A DNA stretch of 64,000 bases. Origin: Macrostomum lignano. Taxonomy: Eukaryota. Each line of letters opens with the position of its first letter. Within the stretch, counting starts at the first letter, position 1. Below are positions 15,201 to 40,218 of the stretch, one piece after another. The notes under the pieces were generated by a model, which worked only from the letters and a program-made list of their open reading frames with translations, was not told where the DNA came from and ran no database searches. Both the position numbers and the translations under genes were made by a program. Where the stretch lies: the NCBI GenBank assembly GCA_002269645.1, contig NIVC01000422.1, forward strand, positions 496,001 to 560,000. Reading direction: 5' to 3'.

Positions 15201-18200
15201 ATCTACATCTGGCAGAGCCTCGGCTCCAGCATCACCTGCCGCCTCGTCTTCGCCAAGACCCGTCTTGCTCCTGCCGCCAAGAAGGGCCTCCTCGTCACCG
15301 TCCCACGCCTCGAGCTCTGGTCAGCTCTCATCGCCACCCGCGCCGCATCTGTAATTCTCGACGCCCTGCGAGATCACCTCAAGTTCGAAGGCGTCACTCA
15401 CTTTATTGACAGCCAGATCGTCCTTCACTGGCTTGCCAACGGTGCCAAACTCCGTGATTACGAGTCGCGTCGCGTTCAACAGATCCTTGACTCCGATGTT
15501 ACACGTGACTATCGTTACGTACCTACAGCCGAGAACCCCGCCGACCACTGCACGAAGCCACTCAGCTTAGCTCAACTGCAGCAGTCCAGCTTCTACGAGG
15601 GCCCCGCCTTCCTCAAGCGGCCGTTTCTCGATTGGCCTTCCTGGACCGCTTCAGCGCCTGACCCTTGACTTTTGAAAGGTGTCCCTGCTAGGAAGAAGCC
15701 TACAACACTCGGGGCTACTCTAATCGCTACTGGATCTGCTGCCTGTGCCACGCCTGGCCACCTGAGCCTCGAGCGCTCCAACCGCCTTGAACACATCCTC
15801 GGCGTCACCTGCTACCTCATCCGACTGAAGGCCTACATCCAGCGACGCCAATTCTCGAAAGACTTCCCGCCTTCTCATGCCGAACGCCAGACGGCCCTTC
15901 TCCTGTGGATCCGAGTAGCCCAAACTGAGTGCTACGGAACCGTCATCCAAGCCCTCGAGTGCGGCCGGCCCAAATCTGAGAAGATCATCACCCAACTGGA
16001 TCTTCATCTCTGTGACGGTTTCATCCGCCTCGGCAGCCGCTTCGCCAACGCTTCCATGGATGAGGACAGCAAGTACCCGCTCCTGCTGCCGCCCGGCCAT
16101 CGCCTGACCCGGCTGCTCATCCTGCTCATCCATCGTCAGAACAGCCACGCTGGTGCCTCCACTGTTCTCGCCATTCTCCGCGACAAATACTGGGTGCCCA
16201 AGGGCCTCCTAACCGTCCGTGATGCGCTCTCCGACTGCATCCAGTGCCGCCTCGCCAAAGGCTCAACTCGCGCGCCGCCCGCACATGGCCAACTGCCCAA
16301 GGAGCGCCTAGACGCCGAAGCTGGTCCCTTCGCCTCCGTACTCGTCGACCAGCTCGGGCCCGTCTTCACCTACGACCATAAGCTCAGAGTCTCCACCAAG
16401 CGCTGGGCCCTGCTCATCACGTGCTGCACTTCAAGAGCCCTCCACATCGAGATCCTCTACGACTACTCCGCTGACGCCGTCCTTCACGCATTCGAGCGCT
16501 TCTGGTGCCGCCGCGGTCTCACCAAATGCACTGTCTACCTTGACCAGGCCACCGCCTTCCAAGCCGCAGGAAAGTTCATCGAGAACCACATCGCCACCGA
16601 CTTCCAGAAAAAGCTCCACAACAACCTCGGACCACTCGCCGCCTCGCGACCCCTGGTGTTCAAGTTCGCGCCAGCCCGAGCCCCCTGGCACCAAGGCGCG
16701 GTCGAGCGCCTCGTCGCCCTCACAAAGTCCAGTCTTCGTCCCGCCCTCTGGCGCAAACGCATCTCCGATGAGGAACTACACACTCTCCTCGTCAAAATCG
16801 AGGCCATCCTCAATTGCCGGCCGCTGACCACTGTCTCCAACGACCCGGCCGATCCGTCACCGCTGACTCCGGCTCACCTCCTCGGGGTTGGCCCTCACCT
16901 GTTACTTCCGGGCCACCACGACGCCTTCCTGCCTGCCGGTACTTCCACTGCTGACCGCCTCCGAGCTCTTCATCGCCGCCGCGACGCCATCCTTAACGAG
17001 TTCTGGGGCCGGTGGAGACAGGAGTACCTCAGCCATCTCCGGTCAGTCCATCTACAAGAACGGCATCGCCACAGACAGCACACCAGCGACGGCATCAGCT
17101 TTCAACCCGGCCAAGCCTGTCTGCTGGCTGAACCTACGCCTCGAGCGACATGGAAAGTGTGCCGGATTCTGCAGCTGCATCCGGACCCAACCGGTGTCGT
17201 CCGGTATGTGACCATCCGCACCGTATCTGGCCACGATGTCCGGCGATCCATTGGACACCTCGTACCCCTCGAGTGTGACATCAACGGCCCGCTTGCCGGC
17301 CCGCCTGCCGGCCCGCCTGCCGGCCCGCCTGCCGGCCCGCCTGCCGGCCCGCCTGCCGGTCCACCTGTCCGCCCGCCGACTGGCCAATCACCCCGCGACA
17401 AGCGCGCCATACGCCGGCAAAAAAATCCGTGACGGCATTTTTGACGCCTGAACTGAACTACATAACCGAATACTCACAGTCACAAGTTAATAATTCTACC
17501 GTTTTACCGTTCAAAATCCCCGCTATTTATCGTTACCTGTTGGCCCCCCGAGCCTGTCGGATTTCCATCCTCCAATTATTTGTACTTTCTGTTTTGCAAT
17601 TCAGCCTTGTACTTTTCAGTTAGCCGACTCCCTTCGTCTACCATGCTCTTCCCCACAGACAATCTCAATCGTTAATTCACCATAGATTATACAACTAACC
17701 TGTTCATTCTGTTAGTATAAATACAAGTTAATCTGGCGGCTTAGGCCCTTCACCTCTCTCTCTTCCTTTCTGCACCACTTAAATCTCGTTCTATTAGTTT
17801 ATTGTCTAATAATAAACTATAATAACAATAATGCCCGAAGCATCTACTTCTAGTAGCAATGTTAGATAAAAATACAACGATCCTCCTAGGGCGACAATGT
17901 GAACACAGAGACGCTACTGAAGCGGGTGAACAAATCCGGCCAGATCCACATGGTCCCAGCCGCTTTGAAAGGCCGCTACATCATCCGTTACACGGTCACC
18001 TCGCCCATGACTACCGAAGCTGACTTGGACTTCGACTACTCCGTCATTAGCGACATCGCTGGTCGAGTTTTGGCCGACGTCGGGCGTGAGCAGCAGCTCC
18101 AGCAGCAGAAGCAGAAACAGCTGCTACAACTGCAGCAACAGCAGCAACTGCAGTTGCCGCAGCAACCGATGCCACAGCAGCCGAGACGGCCACCAAAGAG

Positions 18201-19203
18201 AATCGGCGACTATCGAATGTCTCTGTTGCTAAGCAACGTGACATCCCAGCCGAAGTTTGTCGACAGCTCGTTCGCCGCTCTTACTGACAGTCGAGAGTTG
18301 GCCAGGGTTGGTGGCTGGTCCATCCCTAATCCCATACCCCTAATCCCATATCTTCAATCCAATATCCCTGATCCCCATATACCAAATCTCTAATCCCACA
18401 TCTCAAATCCCATATCCCTGACCACATATCCCATATCCCTAATCCCATACCTCAAATCTCTAATTCGATATCCCATATACCTAATCCCGTATCTCCAATC
18501 CCATATCCCTAATCCCATTTCTCGAATCCTATTTTCCTAATCCCATATCCCTAATCCCATATCTCCAATTCAATATCCCTAGTCCCATACCTCTGATCCT
18601 ATAGCCTTTATATGGCGTTTTTTTCGTAATATCCCTGGTATCGTATCGATAATTCAAAAATCAATAACTTTATTTCGCACGTCGGCTGCTTAATCTCACA
18701 AGAAAGCGCATCCTGAATCCCCAACTATCCAGGACTTCCGCAGCCAGCTGTCCGTGTGGGTGAGCAGTCGACCCTTGTCATTTTCCCCAATCGCCGGGGG
18801 TCGTTCGGCGGCCGCCGCCGCCGCCGCAGCGATGCGCGGTCAGAAAAGTCTCGACTTTGGCGGCGGTTGCCTGCCGCCGCAGTCGCAGAGCTCTTCGACG
18901 ATGTCGACGTCTTGTCGGCGTTTAGTTCGACCTTCTCGTGGCCGTCTGAACTCGCTGGACTCCAAAGTCGACGGCCTGGTGGTGAGCAGCGTCAGCGAGG
19001 CGGACGGGGACGCGGAGGCTGCGGCGGCTGAGGAGGAAGAAGAAGATGAAGATGAGAGCATCTGTGATGAGGTGGATGAAGAAGATGACGGCGAGGACGC
19101 GGATGAAGGCGACAAAGAGGAAGCTGATCAGGATGACGCCAACAATTGCGATGAAAAAGGATCAGGATCTGTTGGAGACGACGCCAAGAAGTCCGGCTAT
19201 TGA
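4347..19203 (+). CDS. Hdc: Histidine decarboxylase (group II PLP-dependent decarboxylase), 10 coding exons, ~710 aa
   Basis: join(4347-4547,4666-4902,6402-6542,7204-7414,7719-7881,8047-8137,8216-8314,10844-10945,17890-18306,18733-19203) = 2133 nt with consistent phases. Motifs: [43 protein letters not shown]-lysine FNPSKW (HDC type; DDC has NPHKW, Tdc has NPNKW), GVAIDFMHWQIPLS, and HDC-type C-terminal SLLLSN...FAA and SLDS. Confidence 0.92.
4666..4902 (+). CDS. Hdc: Hdc coding exon 2
   Basis: CAG acceptor; MTHWQSP...[11 protein letters not shown]...GGGCIL; donor GTGAG at 4903. Confidence 0.93.
4925..5621. repeat. 26/30-bp minisatellite in Hdc intron 2
   Basis: Unit TTGAGTGATTGTCACTCTCTCCTGTGA-like, with occasional extra GATT. 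Confidence 0.93.
5960..6392. repeat. (TCAA)n microsatellite in Hdc intron 2
   Basis: Degenerate ATCA/TCAA run ending at the exon 3 acceptor. Confidence 0.93.
6402..6542 (+). CDS. Hdc: Hdc coding exon 3
   Basis: [16 protein letters not shown]...LIAYCSDQ; followed by non-canonical donor GCCAGT. Confidence 0.88.
6718..7031 (-). mobile_element. tRNA-derived CORE-type SINE in Hdc intron 3
   Basis: Minus strand: A box (TAGTGGTCAGAG) and B box (GGTTCGATTCC), then TGTGTCCTTGAGCAAGACACTTAA...CTGTAAAATGGG matching the CORE-SINE (MIR-like) central domain, then an AT-rich tail at ~6720. Confidence 0.8.
7030..7195. repeat. 24-bp minisatellite in Hdc intron 3
   Basis: Unit ATTGATACAGGGATGAAGGGACAC, ~7 copies, abutting the SINE 5' end and the exon 4 acceptor. 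Confidence 0.9.
7204..7414 (+). CDS. Hdc: Hdc coding exon 4
   Basis: AHSSVEKAA...[14 protein letters not shown]...IGPV; donor GTGAGT at 7415. Confidence 0.93.
7455..7620. repeat. Degenerate ACACTTCTCA(G/A)AG repeat in Hdc intron 4
   Basis: Visible ~13-14-bp periodicity. Confidence 0.75.
7719..7881 (+). CDS. Hdc: Hdc coding exon 5 (PLP-binding lysine)
   Basis: [16 protein letters not shown]...[19 protein letters not shown]; TAG acceptor, GTAAG donor. Confidence 0.93.
8047..8137 (+). CDS. Hdc: Hdc coding exon 6
   Basis: [30 protein letters not shown]; CAG acceptor, GTGAG donor. Confidence 0.93.
8216..8314 (+). CDS. Hdc: Hdc coding exon 7
   Basis: [33 protein letters not shown]; CAG acceptor, GTGAG donor. 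Confidence 0.93.
8341..10680. repeat. 20-bp minisatellite (~116 copies) in Hdc intron 7
   Basis: Unit AACAGGTGACTCTAGTGTCT with a few variant alleles (AGCAG; TCCAGTGGCT; TCTAATGTCT). Phase is kept exactly over 2.3 kb. Confidence 0.97.
10844..10945 (+). CDS. Hdc: Hdc coding exon 8
   Basis: [34 protein letters not shown]; CAG acceptor, GT donor. Confidence 0.9.
11170..11510. repeat. ~29-bp minisatellite in Hdc intron 8
   Basis: Unit CGCTCTTATCGTTCAAGGTCAGTCTCTTA with degenerate ends. Confidence 0.88.
11553..11813 (+). repeat. BEL/Pao 5' LTR (261 bp)
   Basis: Termini TGTCGGA...TTCGACA; TATAAATA at 11714. Confidence 0.93.
11818..11835 (+). promoter_or_regulatory. Primer binding site, complementary to the initiator tRNA-Met 3' end
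   Basis: TGGTAGCAGAG is complementary to the ...CTCTGCTACCA end of eukaryotic tRNAi-Met; it lies 4 nt after the LTR end. Confidence 0.75.
11830..14166 (+). CDS. BEL/Pao gag-protease region
   Basis: LPTFDG...F...F gag motif, triple Zn knuckle (CLYC..H..C / CRNC..H..C / CREC..HHTTLH), aspartic protease ILLDSGC. Frameshifts (-1) into the RT frame near 14110. The true start codon is uncertain. Confidence 0.88.
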   Translation: MVIMVITRSTTDQSGDQTQQSENDHLSASAEATTAAEQPPAESSDPLPAASSATTSAPPAAPSSAPIPATAPTASVDVNALIASMTAMMQQNQQLIQQLAATVRPASTSTASTPASDAHDPAGLIRSTILKNVHLPTFDGTDPAAFPGFWDAFVYRVDRSSLNDVDKFEALRGLLSGSALKKLGALDACQPNAYAEACRVLQANYADTQEQKNASFQRLLALHCNSASDLGELEEFTDALRLATGQLLRLGELACTLDSYVYALWNRLPLEFQSEIRNLRASNKQPLMPTMAELQDHLDCKLKTLRAASATVPVAPFASASLLGNAASRPPSNRSPGGHRAPRTNAAPRPSASLVPSVSQQQKPRRSCLYCDSSDHIAMFCSEVRKPDDRLKIVREKNLCRNCLHSHHTRDCHDTRRCRECNGLHHTTLHGATFASSNQRSAIPRSNANLNAAVGDSNSKGTVNSLVSASADGGLAPTIMATLRATAVNPKDGRTVDCNILLDSGCSYSHLDGAVARKLGLKAARKLTIATSTFHAESRRPVTADLVSFDLQAPDGRRWPITALASEQLAAPIYMPAVDLPKDVLNTLQSVPNGVCNLPPARDKDISLDLILGGDVNQLLIGPAVPALALRPTLTAYLTPFGAILNGSLDSTSTRRINGFLGSSQVLVANTYLNINNESLHLDRLLDRMSNLEVLGIDKGAGKPCLQDDGPTQRLLDSSTRGPDGRISVDLPFKPGAELLPSNFGQAFGRAQATHRRLSLPSARPTTPNSKNGKPKES
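14112..17432 (+). pseudogene. BEL/Pao pol (RT, RNase H, integrase) with one in-frame TGA at 15666-15668
   Basis: [71 protein letters not shown]; then [27 protein letters not shown]. The track ORFs 14343-15668 and 15672-17432 are in the same frame. Confidence 0.88.
17290..17362 (+). repeat. 12-bp GCCGGCCCGCCT tandem repeat at the integrase C-terminus (GPPA)n
   Basis: About 6 copies visible. Confidence 0.88.
17555..17808 (+). repeat. BEL/Pao 3' LTR, lacking the last 7 bp
   Basis: Matches the 5' LTR up to TTATTGTCTA, then diverges. Confidence 0.92.
17890..18306 (+). CDS. Hdc: Hdc coding exon 9
   Basis: [23 protein letters not shown]...YIIRYTVTS...polyQ...MSLLLSNV...FAAL. Acceptor TAG; donor AGG|GTTGGT inferred from phase. 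Confidence 0.85.
18325..18600. repeat. Degenerate ATCCC(TA)ATCCC repeat in Hdc intron 9
   Basis: Visible low-complexity periodicity. Confidence 0.8.
18733..19203 (+). CDS. Hdc: Hdc coding exon 10 (acidic C-terminal tail, stop TGA)
   Basis: CCAG acceptor, phase 0; DFRSQLSVW...[13 protein letters not shown]...E/D-rich. Confidence 0.75.
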   Translation, partial: DFRSQLSVWVSSRPLSFSPIAGGRSAAAAAAAAMRGQKSLDFGGGCLPPQSQSSSTMSTSCRRLVRPSRGRLNSLDSKVDGLVVSSVSEADGDAEAAAAEEEEEDEDESICDEVDEEDDGEDADEGDKEEADQDDANNCDEKGSGSVGDDAKKSGY

Positions 19204-22035: not shown

Positions 22036-24820
22036 TTAAAGCGTCTCTAGTATTATGCCAGGAACTCTACCAGGCTTACTGACATATACAACAACATCGT
22101 AAATATTTTCAATTTCACTTCCATCATTGGAATTACCGTTTAGAATGATGTCAGTTGCTGGTTGCCGAGTCGTTCGTAATCGTCTCGAACGCCGGCGGAG
22201 CCAGAATCCAAGCGCTATCAAAGCGCCACAACCGAGCACTACAGCAGACAGCAGCAGAGCCAGTCGACGATAGAAACTTGCCGGATCGACGCTTTCAGCG
22301 ATCAAATCAAAGTTCACCATCATCTTCGTAAGGCTCTCTGACCTATCTGAGTTAATCAGCTGGTCTTCGAATGCAGTAGAGTAGAAACAAGTCGGATCTT
22401 CAGCACAGATTGTGTCGCTACCGTTGTACCCCACTTTCCGAGAGTATCTTACCAGTTCTATATGGCCGAGGACTTCAATGTCAGGGTAGTGATAGTTAAA
22501 CACCGCGGTGAGTGAACCCGATTTCTTTGACGCTTGTTCTTTAAAAAGATTCAGTAAATTTGGCGTACTCTTCGTGGCGGCAACGCTTACGCTAAGAATG
22601 AGTTGACCATTTTTATTGTCATACTCGATGCTCAATGCGTCTTGCCAACCGCGTTCGATTAGGAATGCTCGTGTGAGCGCGAGTCCGTTCAGACTGAAAT
22701 GTCCAGTAAAGCGAGCTCCAGAAGATGTTACAGACTCAATGAACCGTCGCTCGATAGAAAACTTCCAGTCAATGCGACTGTAAATCAGGCACAGATGTTT
22801 CCATGAGCAGTGACTCGCACTGCTAGCTGTGACATGGGCTGCTGGGAGAATTTCGGGAACTAAAACAATGTGGGAGCGAGCACGCATCCAGTACATCGGC
22901 AGCAGTTCGGGCTCACCGTCTTGTATAGATTTCACTGTACATACAAACGTATTTGCGTCTTTAAAGGAAGCTGAAGTATTTATTCCGTAGAAACGATTCA
23001 AATTATTTTCAGTCGGAGGTAAGTATGCAGTCTGTTTGGTAAGAATCGACGAAAACTGTGAGTTTCTTTGAGTTTTAGTTTTATAATTGACACTTATTCG
23101 CGTGTCTGCTTGGTCAGACACTTCAGTCTCGCAAGTCAGGTTTATGCTGTCACCCTCAGCTACCAAAACTCGATCTGGAGGGTACCTCAGCCTCTGTGGT
23201 GGAACAACTACACGAACTTGTAAATGTGCAGACACTCCTCCTGCTCTGCACATGTAGTCACCACCGTGACTTTTCTGCGACAGTTTCTTCGGCAGTTCGA
23301 TCACGTGACCTCCAGTCGCGATCTTTATTCCATTGTTAAGCGTTGTCCATTGCTTAGTAGGGTAACCTGTTGACAATTCAGCAATCAGAGACTGATTTTT
23401 GTGGTAAAACTCGAATTGTTGACTCCTGATCGCCGAGTTGCACACAATCGGACAAGCTACATGAGAGCGAACCATTCCTGATCGAAGAGTTACACTTCTT
23501 CTTTTCTTACCAACAAGACTGCATTTTGCACCGCGAACTACAAGTGGTGTTCCAGCCTGTCTTGTGCTCGGAAGAGACAAGCGTCCAACTCTTCGGCGAA
23601 CCTCGTAAGGTTCCCGTTCGCCAGAAAGGGACAGAATGACGCAAAATGTGACGTCTCCTGTGCTGCGTTGTTTCATTACATCCATGAAGCCAATTGAGAA
23701 CAATTTCAATCTACCTGTAGCCACGTCCAGTTGTGCATGCCCCATCAGATCCAAGTTCCACTGGTCTAGCTTTGTGTAGAAATTATTTGTTAGAATAACT
23801 GATCGGCTGAACTGCAGATTCTGACAATGGTCTGGACTGAGCGCAAGGCCTACATTGATCAATGGCTGCAAGAATGGAGGAGCTGATTTGATCAGGCTGA
23901 CTAAATTATCACTTATGATTTGGACACTTTGCGCTGTGTCCACCCCTGACTCGATCATGCCTCGCGAAAACAAAGCATTCAGTATTTCCGATGCATTGTG
24001 AACCAAAATAGGAATTTTCAACCAAGCATCCATGGTCCAAACGTAGAGTCGACCGCTTTCCATCAGAATCTTGCCATCGAAGCCTTTCCATACCACCTGC
24101 AGAATCAGCGCATCGCTAAACTTCCCGGCGAGAGCTGATCTTTCGAAACGCCAGTTGGATTTTTCAACAAGTCTAATCAGTAATTCTGTGCGGTCTATTG
24201 AGAACAGCTCGAAAGGACTGCCGGCTGTCAAGCAAAGCTTCTCATTCCTTGTCGTTACCAGCCGATCTTTAAAGTTCCCCTGTTGTAAAGCAGTTTCAGA
24301 AGCACCTTGTTTACATTTATATCGCAGATAAATACTGTTGTACGCTTCGATATGCTTCGCTAATGAAGGAAAGTCAACTTTGATTTTGAGCACGTGACTG
24401 GGTGACTCAGCAGATAAAACGGCCAGCTGTGCTGTTCTCTGTTGACTAGCAAACCATGTGTCGCCCCACATCAGCAAATTCTGGTTGTTGGATGCTACCA
24501 GAGCGAAATCCATTTGTAAAAGCAGCGCTGTAGCAACAATCTGAATGAGTTGTAAATGAATTAATTTGTCAATAGAAATGCAAAGCAATCCAAAATTGTT
24601 TAGAAAATTTATTGCAAACGTTGGCTCAGTATCTAATATAGCTGAGCTGTTGGTAAAATTGAGGAGATACTTATCATCTGCCTATTTGTCAACCGACGGA
24701 TTCTGGTCATTAGTGTATATGCAAGTAGACTTTAGATTTTCTACAAGGTACTATACTATTTAAGTAGGAAAAATTTCCAAAAAATATAGAATTTTTATTT
24801 ACCAAAACATTCAGTGGCAT
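22036..24820 (-). CDS. Type I membrane protein with Ig-like domains, paralog A (~840 aa)
   Basis: complement(join(22036-24540,24803-24820)). GCCATG start gives MPLNVL|IVATALLLQMDFALVAS (signal peptide) across a GTAAAT...TTCAG phase-0 intron. Two Ig-like units (C...GDYMCRA; GDSINLTC...DANTFVC), TM LALLLSAVVLGCGALIALGFWL, stop-transfer RRRS, tail with YDVV and C-terminal ETL. Confidence 0.8.
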
Positions 24821-27800
24821 GGCGTTGTCGAGAAGAATTTTCTTCCAGAAGAACCACTACAAAAACCTGTCGTCTGTATTGTGCTTTGTGTGACAGATTG
24901 ATTTTTAAAACAGTTGCTCCTTAGAACGCTACTCTGGACATTGCAGTTATATTCCAGGTTATTAGCAGATTAAATAGTGACCCATGCTAAAAATGTTCTT
25001 CAATTTTAAGGATTGATATGATATACAATTATAGTAGCTAAGTTCAGCATTCTAGAATGAACTAAAGTTGTAATGGCAAAGTCATCAGTCGCAGTGATGT
25101 TCACTTGGCGGAATTCTAACTTTTGCAGAAGCTTTGCCTTCTGTCACAGCTTTATTTCTTATTTTACGCTTGGTACCGCAACCTGCTTCTAAAATTTACA
25201 GATCGTACGCGCACGTAATGACAAGAGAGAAGTTCATTTTTAGAAAACACTATCTCTTGATTACGTTGCTATAACTGTTCTAAATCTGCTGTAAGTGTTT
25301 GCAAAGTTAAGACTGAAATGCATAGAACTATCTTTATAGGCCCAACTAATTTTGATGAATTGCATGGTTTTGAAAATTGAAACGTTACCTTGTGCTAGAA
25401 AATTGGGACTCCTTTGACTTTTGGAAACAGCAGCCAGAGAACAGGCATAATACTATCAATTTGCGCATAAAATTCTCATTTTGCATGCTGTTATAGGTTA
25501 TATTCTGCTTCTAAAAACATCACGGACAACTGAAAAAGTTACTAAATTTTCCTCGAATTGCATCAATCTTTTACTGTTTCGACAATCGTATAATTGTTGC
25601 TATTATTGTTGAGTATTCGGGAATTGCTAATCTACGAGACGTACTAAGAGTTGTGCATTTTTCCAACAATGACAACAGAAGCCAGTCAACGAAGGGAATG
25701 CCAAGTTGCCAGAGAAGGTCTTCAAGAGTGCACTTTATTATCAGTGCGATAAATCCCTGATTGTCTAATGCGCTCCTAGATCGAGCTCAAGAAGGATGAG
25801 CGCAGAATTCTAGGTTATGGTGAACTTTTTTTACAATATCTTTCACGTAAAACAAAACTAGGCTGTACGATATTTGCGTACGGCTGTACGCAAAGCTAAA
25901 AGCTATATATTACAGTATATTATACATTCGTTCGTTCGATCCGAGCCGTCCTCCAGTCCGAAGCGCTGCCCGACCGCCAGAGGGCTCGGCTGTGGCAGCG
26001 GTGGTCGAAACCATCCTGCTATACAACGCCGAGTGGACGCTGACGGCTACGCTAGAGCGGCAGCTGGACTCGGCGCACTCAGGGCTGCTCCGTGCGGCCT
26101 TTCGAGCTAACGAGAGCGTCGGAACCGAGGCCCTGTACGATCGGGCCAAGCTGCAGCGCCCGTCCATCATCCTGCGCCGGCGGCGACTTAAACTGGCGGG
26201 CCACAAGATCCGGGCCGAGGGCTACTGCCCCCAACCTGTTCAGGACGTCCTGCTGCTCACCTTGCAGGGTCCGTTCAGGCGGGGTCAGGCCCGAACCCGT
26301 CGATACGTGGACTGCCTGCTGTGCGACGCTGGGGCGCCCGACACTGCCAACGGAGCGGACTTTGTTCGCTCCCAGGCTCTGCGGCGCGCCATCTGACGCG
26401 CCCTGCTCCAACTGTGACTGTGCATGCGGGGTCGCGTATTTTGTTGTTGTTGTTGTTGTATATTATACATTACAATATATAAAACATGTTTTTTATAGCC
26501 AGCAATGTACAATGAAATGCAAGTAAAGAAAGGCGAATCAGGATAAAACTAATAGTCACCGGCATGAAACATCTGTTGATGCTAGTCGTATAGTGTATTT
26601 CTTAAGAAAACTGTACAATTGCGGACAATATTTTTTTCAAGAAAAATATGTAAGTGGAAAAGCAAGAATTCGTTGGAAAATACATTTAGGAGCGTATTAC
26701 CTCTACAGAAATCTTCACATTGACTTTCTAATTTGTGTGATTAAATCGTTGGTCCGCGAGCCGTGCGTTATGGCTAGCAGCAATTTTCACAAAACAGGAA
26801 GTTTATGCAACGTCAAAATGGTAGATGAAGCCTATTCCAGCACGAGGCAATGCCCATCTAAGCTCGTTAAAACGTAGGCATAAATAATCCTGTTGTTGCG
26901 TAGGTCAACTGAATATTTAAATTAAAAATTAACAAAGTAGCCATAGGCGCATCAAAAAAAAGTTTAAGTGATGACGAATCGTAGACTTTCTGGGAGAAGT
27001 CTGGTATCGTTTAAGTGTCTGCTGCTTCGAGGACTAGTGGTAATTACTTTAATTTATGAATTTATTTCAATGCCATATTTAGTAAGTTAGATGACAATAT
27101 GCAAAGCGGGAAACATTTTAAGACTTCCACATGCACGAGCCTAGGTCTTCTGGTATGATGCTTCGCGAGAGGATTCACTTTTAGATACTTAAACAAATAT
27201 TTCCAAGCGTTTATTAAAAACTGAAAAAGACACTTTGTTCCAATTCAGCTAAACTTTTTCTATTCTAAACGCGCAGGTTGCAGCCACAGTCTTCTACCTG
27301 CCAGATACATCGGCGCAACGAAATGGTGACAATCGGTATTTGCTGCTATGGGGCGACACCTGGTTTGCCAGTGGACCCAAATTAGCACAGCTGGCCATTT
27401 TATCCGCCGAATCATCCGGTCATATTCTGAATATCAAAACTAACCTTCGCTTCGGGATGACTTCAGAGAACGCAACTAAATATTGTTTCTTAAAATACAA
27501 ATGTAACATCAGTGATTCTGATACAGACTTTTCAGAAGTGAGTCTTCACAGAAATTTAAATGAACAAAAGAAAAAGCTATGCTTCCGAGGCGCTATCGCC
27601 TTTGAGATTGAATCGAAAAGTGGTTTCGATAATTTCGGTTTTCAACTTATTAAATCTTTGGAACAAGGAAGTAAAAACTATACATTTACTCCCACATTCC
27701 GAGATGCACTGACATTGCAGGTGGTATGGAAAGGCTTCGATGGCAAGATTCTGATGGAAAGCGGTCGACTCTACGTTTGGACCATGGATGCTTGGTTGAA

Positions 27801-29628
27801 AATTCCTATTTTGGTTCACAATGCATCGGAAATACTGAATGCTTTGTTTTCGCGAGGCATGATCGAGTCAGGGGTGGACACAGCGCAAAGTGTCCAAATC
27901 ATAAGTGATAATTTAGTCAGCCTGATCAAATCAGCTCCTCCATTCTTGCAGCCATTGATCAATGTAGGCCTTGCGCTCAGCCCAGACCATTGTCAGAATC
28001 TGCAGTTCAGCCGATCAGCCATTCTAACAAATAATTTCTACACGAAGCTAGACAAGTGGAACTTGGATCTGATGGGGCATGCACAACTGGACGTGGCTAC
28101 AGGTAGATTGAAATTGTTCTCAATTGGCATCATGGATGTAATGAAACAACGCAGCACAGGAGACGTCACATTTTGCGTCATTCTGTCCCTTTCTGGCGAA
28201 CGGGAACCTTACGAAGTTCGCCGAAGAGTTGGACGCTTGTCTCTTCCGAGCACAAGACAGGCTGGAACACCACTTGTAGTTCGCGGTGCAAAATGCAGTC
28301 TTGTTGGTAAGAAAAGAAGAAGTATAACTCTTCGATCAGGAATGGTTCGCTCTCATGTAGCTTGTCCGATTGTGTGCAACTCGGCGATCGGGAGTCAACA
28401 ATTCGAGTTTTACCACAACAATCAGTCTCTGATTGCTGAATTGTCAACAGGTTACCCTACTAAGCAATGGACAACGCTTGCCAATGGAATAAAGATCTCG
28501 ACTGGAGGTCACGTGATCGAACTGCCGAAGAAACTGTCGCAGAAAAGTCACGGTGGTGACTACATGTGCAGAGCAGGAGGAGTGTCTGCACATATACAAG
28601 TTCATGTAGTTGTTCCACCACAGAGGCTGAGGTACCCTCCAGATCGAGTTTTGGTAGCTGAGGGTGACAGCATAAACCTGACTTGCAAGACTGAAGTGTC
28701 GGACCAAGCAGACACGCGAATAAGTGTCAATTATAAAACTAAAACTCAAAGAAACCCACAGTTTTCGTCGATTCTTACCAAAAAGACTGTATACTTACCT
28801 CCGACTGAAAATAATTTGAATCGTTTCTACGGAATAAATACTTCAGCTTCCTTTAAAGACGCAAATACTTTTGTATGTACAGTGCAATCTATACAAGACG
28901 GTGAGCCCGAACTGCCGATGTACTGGATGCGTGCTCGCTCCCACATCGTTTTAGTTCCCGAAATTCTCCCAGCAGCCCATGTCACAGCTAGCAGTGCGAG
29001 TCACTGCTCATGGAAACATCTGTGCCTGATTTACAGTCGCATTGACTGGAAGTTTTCTATGGAGCGACGGTTCCTTGAGTCTGTAACATCTTCTGGAGCT
29101 CGCTTTACTGGACATTTCAGTCTAAACGGACTCGCGCTCACACGAGCATTCCTGATCGAACGCGGTTGGCAAGACGCATTGAGCATCGAGTATGACAATA
29201 AAAATGGTCAACTCATTCTTAGCGTAAACGTTGCCGCCACGAAGAGCACGCCAAATTTACTGAACCTTTTTAAAGAACAAGCGTCAAAGAAATCGGGTTC
29301 ACTCACCGCGGTGTTTAACTATCACTACCCTGACATTGAAGTCCTCGGCCATATAGAACTGGTAAGATACTCTCGGAAAGTGGAGTACAACGGTAGCGAC
29401 ACAATCTGTGCTGAAGATCCGACTTGTTTCTACTCTACTGCATTCGAAGACCAGCTGATTAACTCAAATAGGTCAGAGAGCCTTAAGAAGATGATGTTGA
29501 ACTTTGATTTGATCGCTGAAAGCGACGATCCGACAAGTTTCTATCGTGGACTGGCTCTGCTGCTGTCTGCTGTAGTGCTTGGTTGTGGCGCTTTGATAGC
29601 GCTTGGATTCTGGCTCCGCCGGCGTTCG
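22186..29628. repeat. 1.9-kb inverted duplication (22186-24101 vs 27716-29628)
   Basis: Reverse-complement near-identity from LQVVWKG to FWLRRRS. Arms are 1916 and 1913 bp; the 3-bp difference is the PELLPMY/PELPMY indel. Confidence 0.95.
25929..26457 (+). mobile_element. 5'-truncated non-LTR retrotransposon (RTE/CR1-like 3' end)
   Basis: RT C-terminal motif VETILLYNAE.WTLT...LKLAGH..RA; (TTG)n tail; 14-bp TSD GTATATTATACATT at 25915-25928 and 26458-26471. Confidence 0.88.
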
Positions 29629-29778
29629 CGACATCAAAGTTTCGTGGCTACAGGGCCGCAATGCCGGTGGGAAACTGAGCCAGGAAACAATTTCGAACGG
29701 CAAGACGCTTACGATGTCATACTTTTTGTTGATAAGCCAGAGCCGACTGCTGTTATTAGAAATGATTTTTTGTCGTAA
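26971..29778 (+). CDS. Type I membrane protein with Ig-like domains, paralog B (~856 aa)
   Basis: join(26971-27039,27277-29778): MTNRRLSGRSLVSFKCLLLRGLV|VAATVFYL..., phase-0 intron (GTAATT...GCGCAG) at the same position as in paralog A. Same Ig-like/TM core; tail with YDVI. The first exon is inferred. Confidence 0.78.
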
Positions 29779-32766: not shown

Positions 32767-35218
32767 TGAGGGCTGAGCAAAAAGTTTCCGGATGTGCCCA
32801 GACAGAAATAGTTAGAGAGAAAGAAACAGTTAAATCTTTTCAAAGTACTCTTCAGCAGATTCGATGCAAATTTTCATGCGCTTAAATCACTTGCTGAAGC
32901 AGCTGAACCAATCTAAAGCAGGCACCTCCTCCACATGCCGTGTGAAGGCCTTCACTGCAACTTTGGTGATTCATAGCGGATTCCACGCATCCTGCACTTG
33001 ATTTGTGGATGCACAAAAAAGTCGCAGGGGGCCAGGTCGGGGCTGTAGGGTGGATGACCGAGCTCTTGAATGCACTCTCCGGCCAGGAACTCCGCCACCT
33101 GTCGAGCCTTGTGGGCCGGGGCGTTGTCGTGATGGAGAAGGATGCCCCGAGCTCGAGTCCTTGGGCGACGCCTGGAGAGAGCGCTCAGCACTTCTGGCAG
33201 GCAAACGTTGGCGTACCAGTCACCGGTGACTGTGCGCTGCTGCACGAGTGGAACTGTGGCCAGATGACCGGTTTTCGCCACAAAAACAACCACCATCTGC
33301 TTCGCCACGCTGCGCTCTCGCCGAAGCTTATGTAGTGAGTCGCTAGTTTAGTTAAGCGCCGCACTAGTCAGCTGCCTCCCTCGCCCTCGCCCCAGGCTTC
33401 TGTCTGCCGCTGGGCAGTTGCCTGTCCCTCCCGCCTGTCCTCTGGCCTGTCCCTTGCCCGCCTGCCTGTCTGTTTGTTTGTCCTCGTTTGCCCCCGTTTG
33501 CCTCGTGTTCTCGTTTTGCAGTGCCCAGACAGCTTGGTCTGGCCTGCCTCTGTTTCGTTCTCTGTTTGGCATCTCCAAATTTGGAGTGCCATTCTGTTTT
33601 CCGGTCCCACGGTCACGAGTGCCTTCACTTGTGGGCCTTTTCCCCTTGTCATGTGAGCCAGTCACTTGACAAGGCCTTCTTCCTTCTTTAGTCCAAAGTG
33701 CAATGATTTCATCATTGTACGCTGGGCTCGTGTTTATGGGGAGATCATGTGCGCCCGGACCCCCTTGCCTGCTCTGAGGCAGGGCCCGCTTGTTTGTTGC
33801 TAAAAATAGCAACAGAGTCACTTATGACTCTCAGCGGGGGCCTTTCGTGCTATGGTGCAATCGATTCTCCCTATAAATGCGGCCCCTCTCATGGCTTGGC
33901 TCAGCCAAGCGTTTCCGCGTGTTCACCCTTTCGGCCTTTCCGCGTTCCCAGCATTCAGCCTTTCCAGTTTTCCCGAGTAACCGTTCTCTTCGTCCAGCGA
34001 ATACTCTAAGTTTGTGTGCCAAGTTGAGCTAAAGTTTAACTCCAAGACTCCCGACTTTGCGCGTGCCTGCTTCCGTTGCTCCTGCTATCAATTAGCAGGC
34101 CAGCTCGGATCACCCGAAGCTAGCACTTTCGCTCTCACCCCGCACCAGCCCGGTAGGGCCTGCTGACGGTGGGCACCTCTGCGCGAGAACTGCTAAATCT
34201 GCACGGAGTGCGAGTCTCTTTCTCTCGTCTTAGTTATTTGCTTCTACGAGCTCAGCACCTCACCGAAGGCTGCGACTCTGCGAAGCTGGTGGCAGCACTA
34301 CCTAAGCTACAAGTATTGTTTCTAAGAAACCGGCAGCTAGAGGTCACCGCCCTGCACCAGGAGACCTACCAGGCCATCTCTAGTCGACATCGCAGAAGCC
34401 TGTACTTCATTGGTGGCAGCGCTCCTATTGAAGGCCTCTAGACAACAACAGGCAAGACACAAACACTTCACTTAGACGATGGGGTGCCGCCAACTGGAGT
34501 CCGCTGGGCCGACTGCTGCTTAGTCTCCGGGTCGAAACTATAGATCCAGGACTCGTCACCACTGACGATATCCCAAACCGAGTTTGAGCTGCCTCCGTTG
34601 AATCTGTCGAGCATGGTGCGGCACCAGGTCACCCGAGCCTCCTTCTGCTCCGGAGCCAGCTGATGAGGCACCCAGCGTGCAGAAATCTTGCTCAGGTTGA
34701 GCTGTGAATGCAGGATCGTCCTGATGGATCCTGATGAGATGCCCACCTCTGCCTCTATCTGGGTCACAGTCACTCGGGCATCATCCTCAACCATGGCCCG
34801 GAAAGCAGCAACATTATCCTCGGTCGTTGCGGAGACAGACCGGCCGCTGCGCTCCTCATCATCCAGACTCTGCCTGCCGCGTCGAAATTCGGCAAACCAG
34901 TCAAAAACGGTGGATCTAGAAGGTGCTTCATCCCCAAAAGCTCCTCGCAATCGCTCAAGAGTTTCTTGCTGATGCAAACCACTTTTAAAATCGTAATAGA
35001 TCAGTGCTCTAAAATGACTCCTATTGAGCTCCATTGTGAATTTGATAGATAGGGTGGGTATGGTAGCTTGGTTTGGGTGCTGCACTGGCTATATAGGACC
35101 AGTGTGTCTGAAACTTTACAAACATTGTACTTATATAATGTACTTGACACCTATGGTGTCAGATTGTGTCAGCCGCCTCTCAACTATGCACATCCGGAAA
35201 CTTATTGCTCAGCCCTCG
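32767..35218 (-). mobile_element. Mariner (Tc1/mariner, DD34D) transposon, defective, interrupted by a solo LTR
   Basis: 28-bp TIRs (T/C)GAGGGCTGAGCAA(A/T)AAGTTTCCGGATG; TA TSD at 32765-66 and 35219-20; 1308 bp once the insert and one TSD copy are removed. Transposase from ATG 35034 has WVPHQL, GDESW, HDNAPAH and YSPDLAPCDF; frameshift and stop near the C-terminus. Confidence 0.95.
33331..34470. mobile_element. Solo LTR (1140 bp) inserted in the mariner transposase
   Basis: Termini TGTAGTG...CACTTCA; 4-bp TSD CTTA (33327-30 and 34471-74); TATA-like CCTATAAAT at ~33872; no internal coding domain. The transposase frame rejoins across it (GTPSSK|LRRERSVAKQMV). Confidence 0.85.
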
Positions 35219-35238
35219 TATACATGTAGAAGGATTAC

Positions 35239-38200
35239 TGTCGCGAGCAACTCCGGCTAGTGTTTGCGAGTGTTGGTTAGCCACTCAAAAGGGTGGAGAA
35301 GTAGAAGGTGGCTGTGCCTGTGTATTTATTGTCTGACAGAACAGATTTCCGGTTTCATTGAGTGCGCGTGGTGATGTGCTCTAGTAAGGGAGTGGATAGG
35401 CTGGGCCAGTTCGTCACAGAGTGCGAAGTGGCTGTCCTCGAACTGCCTCACTGGGCGCGCATGCTACATCCCTCGTGTGGTAGATCGGAACCTGGGGTGC
35501 GGGTTTGGCTCATGTTACGCGTGATCAAGGAATCAAAGTGTCAGTCTGAGTCAATAGTCAGTCATTGCTGCTGTCCCGTCTGATTTCCGGAGCCTTTCGC
35601 CAGTCGCCCTCTTCGTAGCGTTTCGGCGTCTCTTTAGCCTGTCGGGGGTGCGGCCTGTTGGCGAGCGGGACGTCCTGGTCGGCGGTTGGCTCGTATGGGC
35701 CGGTTGGTTCGTCCGGCTAGCTGTCCTGTCCGCTGTCTCGTTTCTCGTGGCCGTCTGGCCAATCGTCGGCTGCCTGGGAGGCTCGCTTGACGTGGGTGGC
35801 GTGCCTGGAGCAACCTTTGGCCGGCCCGCTGGAGCTGCAGGGTGTTGCCGCAGACTTTTGTCACTGTCCACGGCGAGGCCTCGAAGAAGGGGTCGGTCTT
35901 TCTGCGGTTGGTGAGTCGGCGGAGGACGAGGTCACCCTCGGTGATTTCGTGGTCGGTGGCGCCTCTCTTGCTGTCTGCGAATACCTTCATCCGCTCCTTC
36001 GCCCTGGAGTCGTGGCCGCAAACGGTCTGTCGCCTGGCGTCAACCGGTCGGGAGTAGTGCAGGCTGGGGGATCCTGTCGTTGAGCTGTCGGCCGAACAGC
36101 AGGTCGGCTGGGGCCATGCCGGTTGTTGCGTGCGGTGTTCGACGGTAGGCCGCAAGGTAGTCGTCCATTGCCGTCTGCCAGTCGCTGCTCTCCATGATCG
36201 CCGCTCTGATTGCCTTATTGAGGCCCCAGTTGCATCGCTCCACGAGTCCGTTGGCTTAAGGGTGCAGTGGTGTAGTCCGATGGTGGTTGATGCCCTGACT
36301 GCTCAAGAAGGCGTTGAACTCAGCAGACGAGAATGGCGGGCCGTTGTCGGTGGTCATCTTGACTGATTGGCCAAACGTGCTGAACTACTGGCGGAGGGTT
36401 CGGATGACCGGACTGCTGCTGTCGACCCCGCCATTGTCTGTATCAGTGGAAAACGTGAAAAAGTCGGTGCACACCAGCAGCATGTGGCCTCTGATCGGTT
36501 CCAGGAACTCCAAGCCCAACTCTCGCCAGGGCCCCTGCGGCAACTTAGTAGGCTGGATTGGTGCTGCCTTCAGCTCAGCTATGTTCGTGCAGGCCTTGCA
36601 GCTGAGACAGGAGTTTACAAAATTCTCGACGGAGGCCTGCATAGAAGGCCACCAGACCTTTGTCTGCAGGCGTGCCAAGGATTTTTGGACACCCAGGTGG
36701 CCTTGGTGCTCCAGATGCAGGCAGCGGTAGCGCAGAATGTCGGGAACGACGATTTGGTGCCCTTTGAGCAGGAGTCCGTCGTGCTGTGAGAGCTCGTACC
36801 GCAGGCTGTGTAGGCTGCGCGTGTCGTGGCTTTCGAGTTGCCACCGCTGGGACTGGGCCCGGATACGGCGGCTTGGATCGCCCTGGCGCCTCCGGAGGCC
36901 GCCTTGATCGTGTCGGGGCTGATGCTGTTCGGTGCCGCTGCCTAAGCCGTCATTGCGATGTAGGCCGTGTCGAGATCTTCGCCCTCGTTGTTCGGTGGTG
37001 TTGGACGTGGCTGGCGGCTCAGGACATCCGCCGGGTTGTCTGCCCCTGGTGGGTAGGTGACTTTGAAGTGGAGCTCCTGCAGCTGAAGTGCCATGCGCTC
37101 GATCTGCGGCGGGGGCCGAGAACCAGGGCTGAGCAGGCTGACTAGCGGCTTGTGGTCGGTGAAAACCTTGAACTTTGGGCAGCCGCTAAGGTAGTGGTGG
37201 GATTTGAGGCAGCCGAATTTGATGGCCAGCGCCTCCCTCTCTGTCTGCGAGTAGCGCTGCTCTGTGTCACTGGCGTAGGCTGGCGTAGGTGATTGGCCTG
37301 GTGACACCGCTCGGTTGCATCTAGGCGAGGATCGCCCCGAGGCCGGTCGGCTGGCCTGGTCTCGCAGTTTTTGTTGAAGAAGGCAAGCGTGGTGCTGTGT
37401 GCGATCGACTGCATGATGGAATGGAAGGCAGAGGCTTGCTGTGGGCCCCACGACCACTGCACGTTCTTCTTGGTCAGCTCTCGAAGGGGCCTCGCCTTGT
37501 CGGCGAGATTTGGGATGAAGCGGACTACGAATGTGACGAGTCCGAGGAAGGACCGCACCTCCGTTGCATTTTCTGGTCGCTTGAAGTTGGCCACAGCCTT
37601 CAGCTTTTCCTCGGTCGGTTAGATTCCGGCCGCCGAGAGGCGCGTGGCCAGGAAGTCGGCCTGCTGGGTCGCAATGCGGCATTTGCGGGGGTTCAGAGTC
37701 ACGTTGTGTTGGCGCAGCCTGTCAAGGCAGTTGCGCAGCCTCTCGTTGTGCTCTCAGCTTAGGGTGCTGGCAAAGATGATTGACGTGATGCGAAAGCCAG
37801 GAGCTGATTGTTGTTTAATAACGAATGTGAATGCTTGCGATATATTTGTAGGATAGCCAAAGTTACTTGACGAGCTAAAGACCGAGAGCAATAGCTTAAA
37901 TTTTGTAAATATTAAATTTCACTGATGCACTGGCTAAATGAGTGGGGAGAGTTACAAAATGGTAGAGACTTAAGAGGCGAGGCAATGGCTAGCGCAATGA
38001 TGCACATTGAACAGAGTAGAGTACGCAAAGAGTACGCTCGTACACAATGATTTACTGAGTACACGCAGATCGCAAGCTGCAACCAAAGTGACCAAGCGAA
38101 GTTAAGCAGACAAACCCCACACAGTAACCATTACCAATCAACCATCACTTCAATGATGATGTCGTCATGGACCCACCGCACGCCCCTCAAACCGCTCAGG

Positions 38201-40218
38201 ATGGAAGTCATGACGCGCTGTAGGATTTTTGATGCTGAAGTAAATCCCATGCAAAGACGCTTGAGGCGAAGCAGGCCCAGAGGTGTTGAGAAGGTGAGGA
38301 GGTGACGTGACTTCTCGCTGACCTCGATCTGGTGGAAGGCCTTGGCAACGTCCTGTTCGGAAAAGTAGGTGGAGCCGGCCATCTCATCTGTGACTTCCTC
38401 GAATGTCGGTATTGGCTGCTTTTCTGGAACGACGTGCTTATTGACGTCCCTCAGGTCCTGCGTGATGCGGATCTCACCTGGCGAGGCCTTCGGACCGATC
38501 ACCATACGCGAACTCCAGGCACTGGGCCCCGTCACTCGCTCCAGGATGCTGGCTGCTAGCTGGTCTTTCAGCTTGTTTCCACTGCGGTTCGAAGATGCAC
38601 CGGGACTCGGGACGGAGGGTGGCAGACTGGCACCGCTTCTTCCTTCAGCTGGATGCTGACTGAGACGCCCTTAATGCAGCCAATTCCTTGAAACCTGTCG
38701 CTGAACTCCTTCATGATCGATGACAGTCGCAAATCTTGCGGAAGGTGCAGGTCGTTGACTGTTGGTGTTAGTCTGGCGGTGAGAGCTGTCTCAGCCTGCG
38801 GTCCGACCCTCAGCATCCCCATCTGCGCGCTTGTCTCGCGGCCCAGGATGGTGATGCAGTCCTCTCTGATGACGATGAAGCGCACTCACTCCGAGTTGCC
38901 GTTGATCTTTGTGTGCAGAGTGATCTGGCCAGCGGGTGTCAGGGGTCTCGCTGCTCGAGAGGATAGACCTTTGTGTGTGTGGGCTGTAGCGCCAGCTCGG
39001 GTGCTCCCGTTAGACGAAGTGTCCCCTGGCTGAGCACGTTGCAGCTCGCGCCGCTGTCGATCAGGACGGGTACGTTCGAGCCGTTGATGATCGCTTTGAA
39101 GGTGGCGCTTCTGCGGCTAGGGTCGAGGCTGGAGAATGCCGCCTCCGCCAGGTGCGCCACTGCCGGTTCCTCTGGTTTAGGCTCTGTCATGTTGATGCGT
39201 GCGCGGCCGCTTAGGCAGGCTTTCGCCAGGTGGTGCAGCTTGCCGCAGTTGCTGCAGCGCTTGCCTTGGGCCCGGTTGCAAGTGCGGTAGCCGGGCTCTC
39301 CGCACCTCAGGCATTTGTCGGCCGGGCTTGCTGGCGGGCGCCTTGCGGGGCGCTTGTCGCGAGCCGCATGCACTTCTTCACCTGGTCCGGCTGCTGGGCG
39401 CTCCATAGCCGCCTGCTGGCTGGCTGCTTCGTTTGTTCTCGCCAGCTGGGGGCCTCCGGGAGGCAGATGTTGGGCACGTTCATGAGAAGCCGCTTTCGGA
39501 GGGAGTCGCTGCGGCAGCAGCCGACGATCTGGTCGCGGATGAGAGACAGCTGGCGCAGCTCTCCGAACTGGCAGGCCCCAGCCGAGTTGCACAGTCGGAT
39601 GTACCAGCTGTTGATGGCTTCCCCGTCCACTGAGCTGCGTGCACTGGCGGAATTGGTACCGGGTGAACACGACCTTGCGTCCTTGAAAGTGCTGAGTTAG
39701 CGTCGCTATGAGTGAGTCGAGCGTTTGCTGCTCCGGCCTGTTAGTTGCTGGCCGTGTCGCTGAGATCTCTTTAAAATGTCCGAGACCTCTTTTCCCGCAA
39801 TGTACAGGAGAATTTCCTGCTTCTGGGCGTCGTCAGACACTCCTGATGCTGCAGGAATCGCTTTATAGTGTGGTCGCCCACTCTTTCCAGCGCTTGCTGA
39901 CGGTGTGAGAGTCCGCGCTGACGCTGAATGCGGATTGCGGCTGTAGCTGTAGTAGCGCCATTTGGTTCTGGTTTGCGACGCCAATGTACATGTAGCGAGA
40001 AACTTCGGCTAGTGTTTGCAAGTGTTGGTTAGCCACTCAAAAGGGTGAAGTAGAAGGTGGCTTTGCCTGTGTATTTATTGTCTGACTGAACAGATTTACG
40101 GTTCATTGAGTGCGCGTGGAAATGTGCTCTAGTAAGGGAGTAGATAGGCTGAGGCTGGGTCACAGAGTGCGAACTGGCTGTCTCTGAACTGCATGCCTCA
40201 CTGCGTGCGCATGCTACA
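35239..40218 (-). mobile_element. Ty3/Gypsy LTR retrotransposon, full length but decayed
   Basis: LTRs 35239-35468 and 39991-40218 (TGT...ACA, visibly diverged); 5-bp TSD ATTAC; PBS-like TGGCGTCGC. Order gag (ATG 39961; Zn knuckles CLRC/CSNC), protease LIDSGAS, RT (QDLRDVNK, VHDDIII), RNase H (YSQTEREALA, TDHKPL), integrase (KVWWPSM, ER.N, YRRTPHATTG). Many frameshifts and stops. Confidence 0.93.
37781..38152 (-). mobile_element. Solo LTR (372 bp) inserted in the Gypsy RT active-site region
   Basis: Termini TGACGTGATG...CATCACTTCA; 5-bp TSD ATGAT (37776-80 and 38153-57); splits VHDDII|IFAS. Strand is taken from an ATTAAA on the minus strand and is tentative. Confidence 0.85.

Follow-up and report, generated by a model that had tools for sequence, protein, structure and literature searches.

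Background

The human G-gamma and A-gamma globin genes and the arms of inverted repeats and palindromes are classical cases of partial concerted evolution, with sharp edges to the exchanged tracts. Among immunoglobulin (Ig)-like proteins, the paired receptors KIR, LILR and Siglec-11/Siglec-16 are homogenized by gene conversion; in these classical pairs the ligand-binding ectodomain is homogenized while the transmembrane (TM) segment and tail differ, with an immunoreceptor tyrosine-based inhibitory motif (ITIM) on one side and a charged TM residue on the other. Alr1 and Alr2 of Hydractinia are type I membrane proteins with Ig-like domains, a divergent distal domain and allelic hypervariability in the population. 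To our knowledge, gene conversion has hardly been described in the flatworm phylum. Here we describe a pair of divergently transcribed genes, A and B, in a 64,000-nucleotide stretch of the genome of the flatworm Macrostomum lignano (positions 496,001 to 560,000 of contig NIVC01000422.1, assembly GCA_002269645.1), hereafter the window, to which all coordinates refer unless another contig is named. The two genes share a near-identical core that is flanked by deeply diverged ends, a pattern that we attribute to probable interlocus gene conversion.

The pair shows likenesses to each of these systems and differences from each. Like the globin genes and the palindromes, A and B are old duplicates with an apparent kilobase-scale conversion tract and abrupt edges, and as in inverted repeats and palindromes their inverted orientation permits exchange without deletion of the spacer. 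They differ in belonging to another gene family and taxon, and the nucleotide alignment shows no simple-sequence hotspot at the tract edges. Like the vertebrate paired receptors, A and B are neighboring Ig-like paralogues with one part near-identical, apparently by conversion, and another part different. The arrangement is however the opposite: whereas the paired receptors have homogenized ectodomains, the membrane-distal regions of A and B are only 37 % identical and their TM segments are identical and uncharged. With Alr1 and Alr2 the pair has in common the type I Ig-like architecture and the divergent membrane-distal domain. The variability of Alr is however allelic and seen at the population level, whereas A and B are known from one haplotype and their distal regions have a purifying-type ratio of nonsynonymous to synonymous divergence (dN/dS). 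Pfam and phmmer searches found no sequence relationship of A and B to the Alr proteins.

A further comparison is with the family of L1CAM, neurofascin, NrCAM and neuroglian, whose Bravo_FIGEY domain is shared with several M. lignano relatives of A and B but not with A and B themselves. Neurofascin and contactin Ig arrays rank top in the fold search for the A/B family. The L1CAM ectodomain, however, consists of six Ig and three to five fibronectin type III (FN3) domains, compared to only two weak Ig matches and no fn3 domain (Pfam) in A and B, and the FIGQY-type ankyrin-binding motif of the L1CAM cytoplasmic domain is likewise found in neither protein.

Results

A near-identical core with step-like edges

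The two genes lie on opposite strands and point apart, with the open reading frame (ORF) of gene A at 22036-24588 on the minus strand and that of gene B at 27340-29778 on the plus strand (ORF list). Each is carried by one exon of about 2.5 kb and encodes a type I membrane protein of about 840 amino acids, and over their whole length the two proteins are 83 % identical (BLASTP). From LQVVWKG through the TM segment to RRRS, the genes form the arms of an inverted repeat, at 22182-24114 (minus strand) in A and 27703-29632 (plus strand) in B, as identified by blastn and by the dS and dN values and bounded from the nucleotide alignment. The arms are 97.62 % identical over 1,933 nucleotides (nt; blastn), differing at 43 mismatched positions and by a single gap of 3 nt, and are separated by 3.6 kb of unique DNA. 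The stretch from LQVVWKG to FWLRRRS aligns over 638 codons, in which 25 amino acids and 39 nucleotides differ and to which one codon indel is added, in exact agreement with the approximate counts of the initial annotation of this DNA, which had described a divergent gene pair with a core of about 638 amino acids, about 25 substitutions and one codon indel.

Identity per 60 nt rises from about 35-50 % to 95-100 % within a single 60-nt interval at both ends of the tract. In the nucleotide alignment both steps are less than 20 nt wide without any gradient and both fall within the single large exon, so that the sharp intra-exonic boundaries proposed initially are confirmed. Divergence is far from uniform along the alignment: the two-breakpoint maximum chi-square is 839, compared to at most 20.7 in 100 column permutations. 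Inside the tract the differences are evenly distributed (Kolmogorov-Smirnov p 0.34; 22 transitions and 17 transversions) and the sole indel is a whole codon, in frame. These features are expected of real, slightly aged copies rather than of sequencing noise, and the even spread fits one dominant last event.

The 3' edge of the tract coincides with the junction between TM segment and cytoplasm, right after RRRS. In the structure model a predicted strand begins at the 5' edge, past a low-confidence loop; this is at most a candidate domain border. Similarity at the junctions is short (GATGCRCTGA; CGGCGTTCG). Nucleotide comparison revealed no similarity between A and B in the intron or in the upstream and downstream DNA, indicating that the duplication itself is old. 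No third copy of the gene was found within the window.

Synonymous divergence along the two genes

We estimated synonymous (dS) and nonsynonymous (dN) divergence and their ratio (omega) for each region by the method of Nei and Gojobori. The core has a dS of 0.030 and a dN of 0.018, and its omega of 0.6 is indistinguishable from relaxed evolution (binomial p 0.10). For the N-terminal region (about 150 codons) dS is about 2.1 and saturated (proportion of synonymous differences, pS, 0.71), with a dN of 0.58 and an omega of 0.27. The tail (about 45 codons) has a similarly saturated dS of about 2.1 (pS 0.70), a dN of 0.70 and an omega of 0.33. At identical degenerate residues the two genes use the same codon at 579 of 591 positions in the core, compared to 26 of 49 in the N-terminal region. 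Because the synonymous sites of the core are near-identical, constraint at the protein level cannot explain the pattern and DNA has been exchanged; a selection-only account of the core identity is rejected on both synonymous divergence and codon identity. A tract dS of 0.03 between saturated flanking coding sequences, with discrete breakpoints, is the pattern expected of interlocus conversion. The initial proposal of a core homogenized by gene conversion is thus borne out by the contrast in dS and the sharp steps, with ectopic recombination included in the term.

One stretch within the N-terminal region lies between these extremes. The block of 125 nt and 41 codons encoding LLxWGDTWFAS...IK, located at 24365-24488 (minus strand) in A, where it reads LLMWGDTWFAS...IK, and pairing with 27329-27453 (plus strand) in B, is 76 % identical at the nucleotide level and has a pS of 0.40 (dS about 0.57), whereas its neighbors have a pS of 0.76-0.93. 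This result suggests a third age class resulting from an older exchange. Alternatively, the block may be the consequence of nucleotide-level constraint near the exon start.

The diverged ends and the protein architecture

The old diverged N-terminal region, which comprises the end of the signal peptide and the membrane-distal region, spans 24115-24540 (minus strand) in A and, on the same basis, 27277-27702 (plus strand) in B. The two regions are identical at 52 of 146 aligned residues (37 %), with a pS of 0.70-0.93 outside the intermediate block, and each retains the W, W, C, C and F positions that are conserved in the family (alignment A1, see below). A distal domain keeping only a few motifs, as it was first described, understates this residual identity and that of the 125-nt block. 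The diverged cytoplasmic tails, each of about 47 amino acids, occupy together with the stop codon 22036-22181 (minus strand; YDVV motif) in A and 29633-29778 (plus strand; YDVI motif) in B. They have 29 % amino-acid identity and a pS of 0.70; the initial description of them as largely unrelated needs correction in that they have the motif YDV[VI]x[YF]VxKP in common. The family-conserved residues, together with a dN/dS of about 0.3, indicate that both ends have been maintained as coding sequence.

Each tail contains one YxxPhi motif. We found in the tails of A and B neither an ITIM, sought as [SIVL]xYxx[IVL], nor the spacing of an immunoreceptor tyrosine-based activation motif (ITAM). Bravo_FIGEY (PF13882) has no match in A or B even at E-values up to 1 (Pfam), and no FIGEY-encoding exon was found downstream of either gene.

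The N-terminus is hydrophobic in both spliced protein models. Each protein has a single strong TM segment (LALLLSAVVLGCGALIALGFWL), at 29551-29616 (plus strand) in B and 22198-22263 (minus strand) in A, which is identical in the two proteins, free of charged residues and placed by the best 19-residue Kyte-Doolittle window (2.48) and by a helix at residues 753-785 of the AlphaFold2 (AF2) model. Two canonical Ig-type domains are located approximately at 28294-28911 (plus strand) in B (C..CPIVC / W / GDYMCRAGG and INLTC / FVCTV), based on Pfam Ig_3, invariant Cys, Trp and Tyr columns and Foldseek, and by their mirrored position at about 22903-23523 (minus strand) in A. In curated libraries the Ig-type matches are confined to one region and to sub-threshold hits to Ig_3, V-set and ig, the Ig_3 match having an E-value of 1.3e-4, below the gathering score. 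The Ig pattern itself is canonical and conserved in A1 (C363/C367, W398 and Y429-x-C431; C470 ... FVC).

The AF2 model obtained with the shallow alignment A1 is of medium confidence (predicted local distance difference test score, pLDDT, 56) and consists mostly of beta-strands with some short helices, the second Ig region being modeled at a pLDDT below 50; a single-sequence model (pLDDT 31.6) was unusable. Foldseek ranks highest among PDB structures the Ig arrays found in contactin, neurofascin, sidekick, hemolin and titin, with a probability of 1.0 and low template modeling scores of at most 0.48 on the target. Sequence searches of the PDB with a single sequence and with a profile gave nothing significant. 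Taken together, these results support A and B as single-pass membrane proteins with Ig-like domains.

Relatives in Macrostomum lignano

An exhaustive HMMER (phmmer) search of 1.84 billion representative proteins returned 17 matches. Six of these are full-length relatives of about 900 amino acids, matching over query positions 1-769 with E-values from 1.3e-38 to 6.4e-23, and a seventh, more distant one matches only in part (E-value 9.5e-6). All seven are from M. lignano and all are unnamed, while the remaining matches cover the Ig region only. The relatives (PAA70766.1/PAA70765.1, corresponding to Mlig011430g1/Mlig020049g1, as well as PAA49069.1, A0A1I8GDY1, PAA58182.1, PAA69490.1 and A0A1I8ITC0) are 21-32 % identical to A and B and can be aligned over nearly their full length; their UniRef entries read 'Bravo_FIGEY domain-containing' or 'Ig-like domain-containing'. 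Judging from sequence similarity, A and B are not orphans and their only detectable relatives are in M. lignano. In one further M. lignano protein (P0013) the likeness to the family is limited to its N-terminal part of about 350 amino acids.

The family alignment A1 contains 55 invariant columns, 10 of them Cys, and the invariants include the cysteines of both canonical Ig domains (CPIxC / W / G.Y.C.AG; L.C / F.C). Motifs follow one another in the order LLxWxDxW, APxF..xN.G, CPIxC, G.Y.C.AG, a juxtamembrane C..D..CFYSTxF and the TM segment. PF13882 Bravo_FIGEY, the cytoplasmic domain of the L1CAM family, is found in 4 of the 8 M. lignano members of A1 as a full-length match (E-value 5.8e-15, positions 1-86 of 86, FIGEY/FIGDY included). 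What these L1CAM-type tails suggest is a family of adhesion molecules and not one of immune-type receptors.

Other searches added no relatives, and the collections searched yielded neither outgroup orthologues nor a second genome of the species by which donor and acceptor could be told apart. Word-indexed protein searches with B and with A1 returned nothing, which reflects the sensitivity limit of the tool and not absence. Exact-product look-ups of both ORFs found no matching record, and a metagenome scan with the family patterns found no relative. We found no literature on the M. lignano gene identifiers, and a literature search on Macrostomum and immunoglobulin retrieved only vertebrate KIR-type papers. 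The statement in the initial annotation that the proteins belong to no named family is correct for curated libraries, but it misses the full-length homologues in M. lignano, several of which are L1CAM-tailed. The family is best described as uncharacterized, flatworm-restricted Ig-like membrane proteins of adhesion type, with A and B as a short-tailed branch.

The loci of the relatives resemble the A/B locus in encoding proteins with a single TM segment, mostly on one large exon, and in forming adjacent pairs of paralogues. The pairs of relatives are however in tandem on the same strand, whereas A and B are inverted. Two tandem pairs, each on one strand with the genes 3-4 kb apart, lie in contigs NIVC01001207.1 (locus L001, 3102-12800) and NIVC01002404.1 (locus L002, 10001-18900). 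The pairs are 46 % and 40 % identical, the one aligned residue by residue (P0001/P0019) is evenly diverged, and no nucleotide-level identity tract was found in either. While the relatives have their signal peptide within the big exon and the FIGEY sequence on a small 3' exon, A and B possibly have a tiny 5' exon. The tails also differ, being about 100 amino acids long and the best-conserved part in the relatives, compared to about 47 amino acids without Bravo_FIGEY in A and B. Among the M. lignano paralogues, identity is 31-43 % in the distal region and 35-47 % in the core. Since the distal region of the relatives is about as diverged as their core, the mosaic of A and B is a property of this locus, in which the core was homogenized, and a variable tip on a constant stalk is not a family trait.

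These observations bear on the function first suggested for the locus, that of paired or allorecognition receptors with a diversifying ligand-binding tip. The identical and uncharged TM segments, the lack of ITIM and ITAM in the tails, the one YxxPhi motif in each and the divergent distal domains speak against paired receptors. Nor does the distal tip look diversifying, with a pairwise dN/dS of about 0.27 at saturated dS. Allorecognition is not supported either: the available proxies, namely this ratio of 0.27 and the lack of excess distal divergence in M. lignano, give no indication of it, bearing in mind that a pairwise dN/dS between paralogues of one haplotype is no test of allelic diversity.

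Gene models and the region between the genes

The large exon of gene A, exon 2, is located at 22036-24540 (minus strand; 834 codons plus stop) on the basis of its ORF, the acceptor TTCAG preceding ATT and full-length alignment to the M. lignano relatives. The corresponding exon 2 of gene B is at 27277-29778 (plus strand; 833 codons plus stop), based on the ORF, the acceptor GCGCAG preceding GTT and alignment A1. Sequence inspection and a candidate scan led us to propose for gene A an exon 1 at 24803-24820 (minus strand), encoding MPLNVL (ATGCCACTGAATGTTTTG) and followed by a GTAAAT donor. For gene B a proposed exon 1 at 27070-27081 (plus strand) would encode MPYL (ATGCCATATTTA) and is followed by a GTAAGT donor. 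The GTAAxT donors of both join the AG acceptors in phase 0, and the joined models have 840 amino acids for A and 837 for B. A tiny first exon in both genes is plausible on this evidence. Alternatively, a spliced leader may be trans-spliced onto the exon-2 acceptors and donate the AUG. The spliced leader of Macrostomum species probably ends in an ATG start codon (PMC10468722). Trans-splicing onto the same acceptors would leave the A and B proteins almost unchanged.

The proposed start codons are separated by a divergent intergenic region of 2.25 kb (24821-27069), in which sequence comparison showed no similarity between the A and B sides. This region contains a retrotransposon fragment at 25925-26460, which is GC-rich (about 62 %), 5'-truncated and ends in a (TTG)n run. 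It resembles the C-terminal end of a non-LTR (long terminal repeat) retrotransposon ORF (...LLYNAEWTLTATLERQLDSAHSGLLRAAF...) and has no Pfam match.

Other features of the window

The window is eukaryotic and transposon-rich. A Sec16 orthologue at 51190-61270 (plus strand) has a 4.1-kb exon that consists mostly of a low-complexity repeat (SQAYQQSAPPPA)n, with conserved-domain exons near 56.4, 58.3, 59.2 and 61.0 kb; the best identity of the conserved domain is 49 %, to M. lignano Sec16. Minisatellites in the introns of this gene, at 55500-56400 and 59600-60600, give rise on either strand to long ORFs that are spurious, and a Pfam MINT_RAM7 match at 59689-60375 (minus strand) was rejected as a minisatellite artefact.

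Mobile elements include a GC-rich (58-62 %) BEL/Pao LTR retrotransposon at 11830-17432 (plus strand) with DUF1759 gag, Peptidase_A17, RVT_1, an integrase zinc-binding domain and DUF5641, its frame being broken into at least three pieces. A DNA transposon-like unit at 40334-45140 is bounded by terminal inverted repeats of 340 nt with 99 % identity (40334-40673 and 44801-45140) and encloses a 536-amino-acid ORF with HTH_Tnp_4 (PIF/Harbinger-type) and a 292-amino-acid ORF. The GC-rich block at 34468-39700 (minus strand) carries a mariner-type helix-turn-helix fragment (34468-35085) as well as Ty3/gypsy-type RNase H and aspartic protease fragments (36942-37682 and 38939-39670). The remaining features are a minisatellite at 8199-10800 with a period of 20 nt (more than 115 overlapping 300-nt copies, about 90 % identity) and a degenerate 7-nt array at 18325-18614 (CCCTAAT/CCCATAT units with 14- and 21-nt spacing) that is reminiscent of interstitial telomere-like repeats.

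Discussion

We propose that A and B are an old inverted duplicate pair and that a 1.93-kb stretch was probably copied between them by interlocus (ectopic) gene conversion. The starting point would have been an old head-to-head duplicate pair of Ig-like beta-sandwich type I membrane proteins. The stretch copied from one gene to the other would exclude the distal 150 or so residues and run through the TM helix and the RRRS stop-transfer sequence, with the last conversion event dating to about 0.03 synonymous substitutions per site ago. The N-terminal region, like the short cytoplasmic tail, would have been left out and would thereby have kept its original deep divergence. The 125-nt intermediate block would suggest more than one exchange at different times, and we infer that conversion has been recurrent. 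Exchange between inverted paralogues at a distance of 3.6 kb can leave the spacer in place, and a length of about 2 kb is not unusual for tracts of ectopic conversion. We further infer that both genes encode expressed surface proteins of adhesion or recognition type, with the same stalk and anchor and with different distal surfaces and tails.

Several points weigh against this proposal. Homology-dependent conversion should not initiate between DNA that is only about 50 % identical, like the flanks of the tract, which makes one single event between paralogues that are fully diverged mechanistically awkward. Recurrent conversion, in turn, would more naturally leave graded than step-like edges. 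The observations come from one pair in one genome and do not fix the direction and number of events, the donor may lie outside the 64-kb window, and the structure model is of medium confidence only (pLDDT 56). It is possible that the core has been repeatedly homogenized from the duplication onward while selection or chance kept the ends out of the exchange. It is also possible that the last event was a homology-poor replacement, maybe from a paralogue that lies outside the window. The intermediate-age block favors repeated exchange while the step edges and uniform tract age favor one dominant recent event, and the two are not mutually exclusive.

Other explanations differ in what they make of the same edges. 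A single recent homology-poor replacement, by template switching or break-induced replication between the inverted copies or by a patch from a third paralogue elsewhere in the genome, inserted into one gene or both without any long-term concerted evolution, would account for the step-like edges and the uniform age of the tract, is not hampered by flanks too diverged for classical homology-dependent initiation, and could have used the short similarity at the junctions (GATGCRCTGA; CGGCGTTCG). We nevertheless consider it unlikely, if still conceivable, as the intermediate-age block suggests an earlier exchange, no third copy exists in the window, and seamless in-frame junctions at both ends are easier to obtain by homologous exchange. 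Somewhat less probable again is a recognition system maintained by selection, such as a paired, allorecognition or mate-recognition locus, in which repeated conversion holds the stalk and TM segment identical, conversions reaching into the distal domain or tail are purged and the two proteins keep distinct ligand specificities and outputs. Selection against over-long tracts would yield sharp edges like these, the tails do differ, the 3' step is exactly at the TM/cytoplasm junction with the 5' step at a predicted strand start, and the three age classes hint at repeated exchange. These coincidences with boundaries are however post hoc, the 5' one being no more than a candidate domain boundary. 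The distal dN/dS of about 0.27, the YDV[VI] motif in both tails, and the lack of ITIM, ITAM or charged TM residue also weigh against it. Among the M. lignano paralogues, divergence of the distal region does not exceed that of the core, and the tandem pairs are uniformly diverged, with no exchange. A specific form of this idea, a flatworm module for cell-cell, self/non-self or mating-partner recognition in which selection confines conversion to stalk and anchor, is doubtful; such a module would display unlike binding surfaces and cytoplasmic tails on one identical scaffold, an invertebrate design of surface receptor derived from the L1CAM-tailed adhesion family after the ankyrin-binding tail was lost.

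An assembly artefact, through a collapsed, chimeric or fold-back assembly that made or patched one tract, has also to be considered since inverted duplications are a known artefact of long reads and a difference of 2.4 % is within the range of allelic divergence. It is very improbable for a locus whose arms are neither adjacent nor identical, with 3.6 kb of unique DNA between them, whose only indel is a whole codon, and in which each arm continues seamlessly in frame into an N-terminal region and a tail of its own, both old and family-conserved. Finally, one could dispense with exchange altogether and suppose a core under very strong purifying selection between fast-evolving ends, given that the family-conserved Ig and Cys motifs sit in the core. 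We give this account practically no weight: the codon usage at identical residues (579 of 591 in the core, 26 of 49 in the N-terminal region) speaks against it, the core with its omega of 0.6 is not especially constrained, and the cores of the M. lignano paralogues are only 35-47 % identical.

Gene conversion between A and B, our preferred explanation, makes the locus a clean example of a known process and not a new kind of system. As a natural case of partial concerted evolution it combines a 1.9-kb tract, step edges, three age classes and inverted orientation. It also draws attention to a lineage-restricted, uncharacterized family of Ig-like surface proteins, in which the L1CAM-type tail is replaced in A and B by short divergent tails. 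A conversion mosaic of this kind means that whole-gene trees of A and B would be wrong, and if the ends are not kept apart by selection the locus is a caution for orthology and dN/dS pipelines. If, on the other hand, it is true that selection keeps the ends apart, the locus would be a way into flatworm surface recognition.

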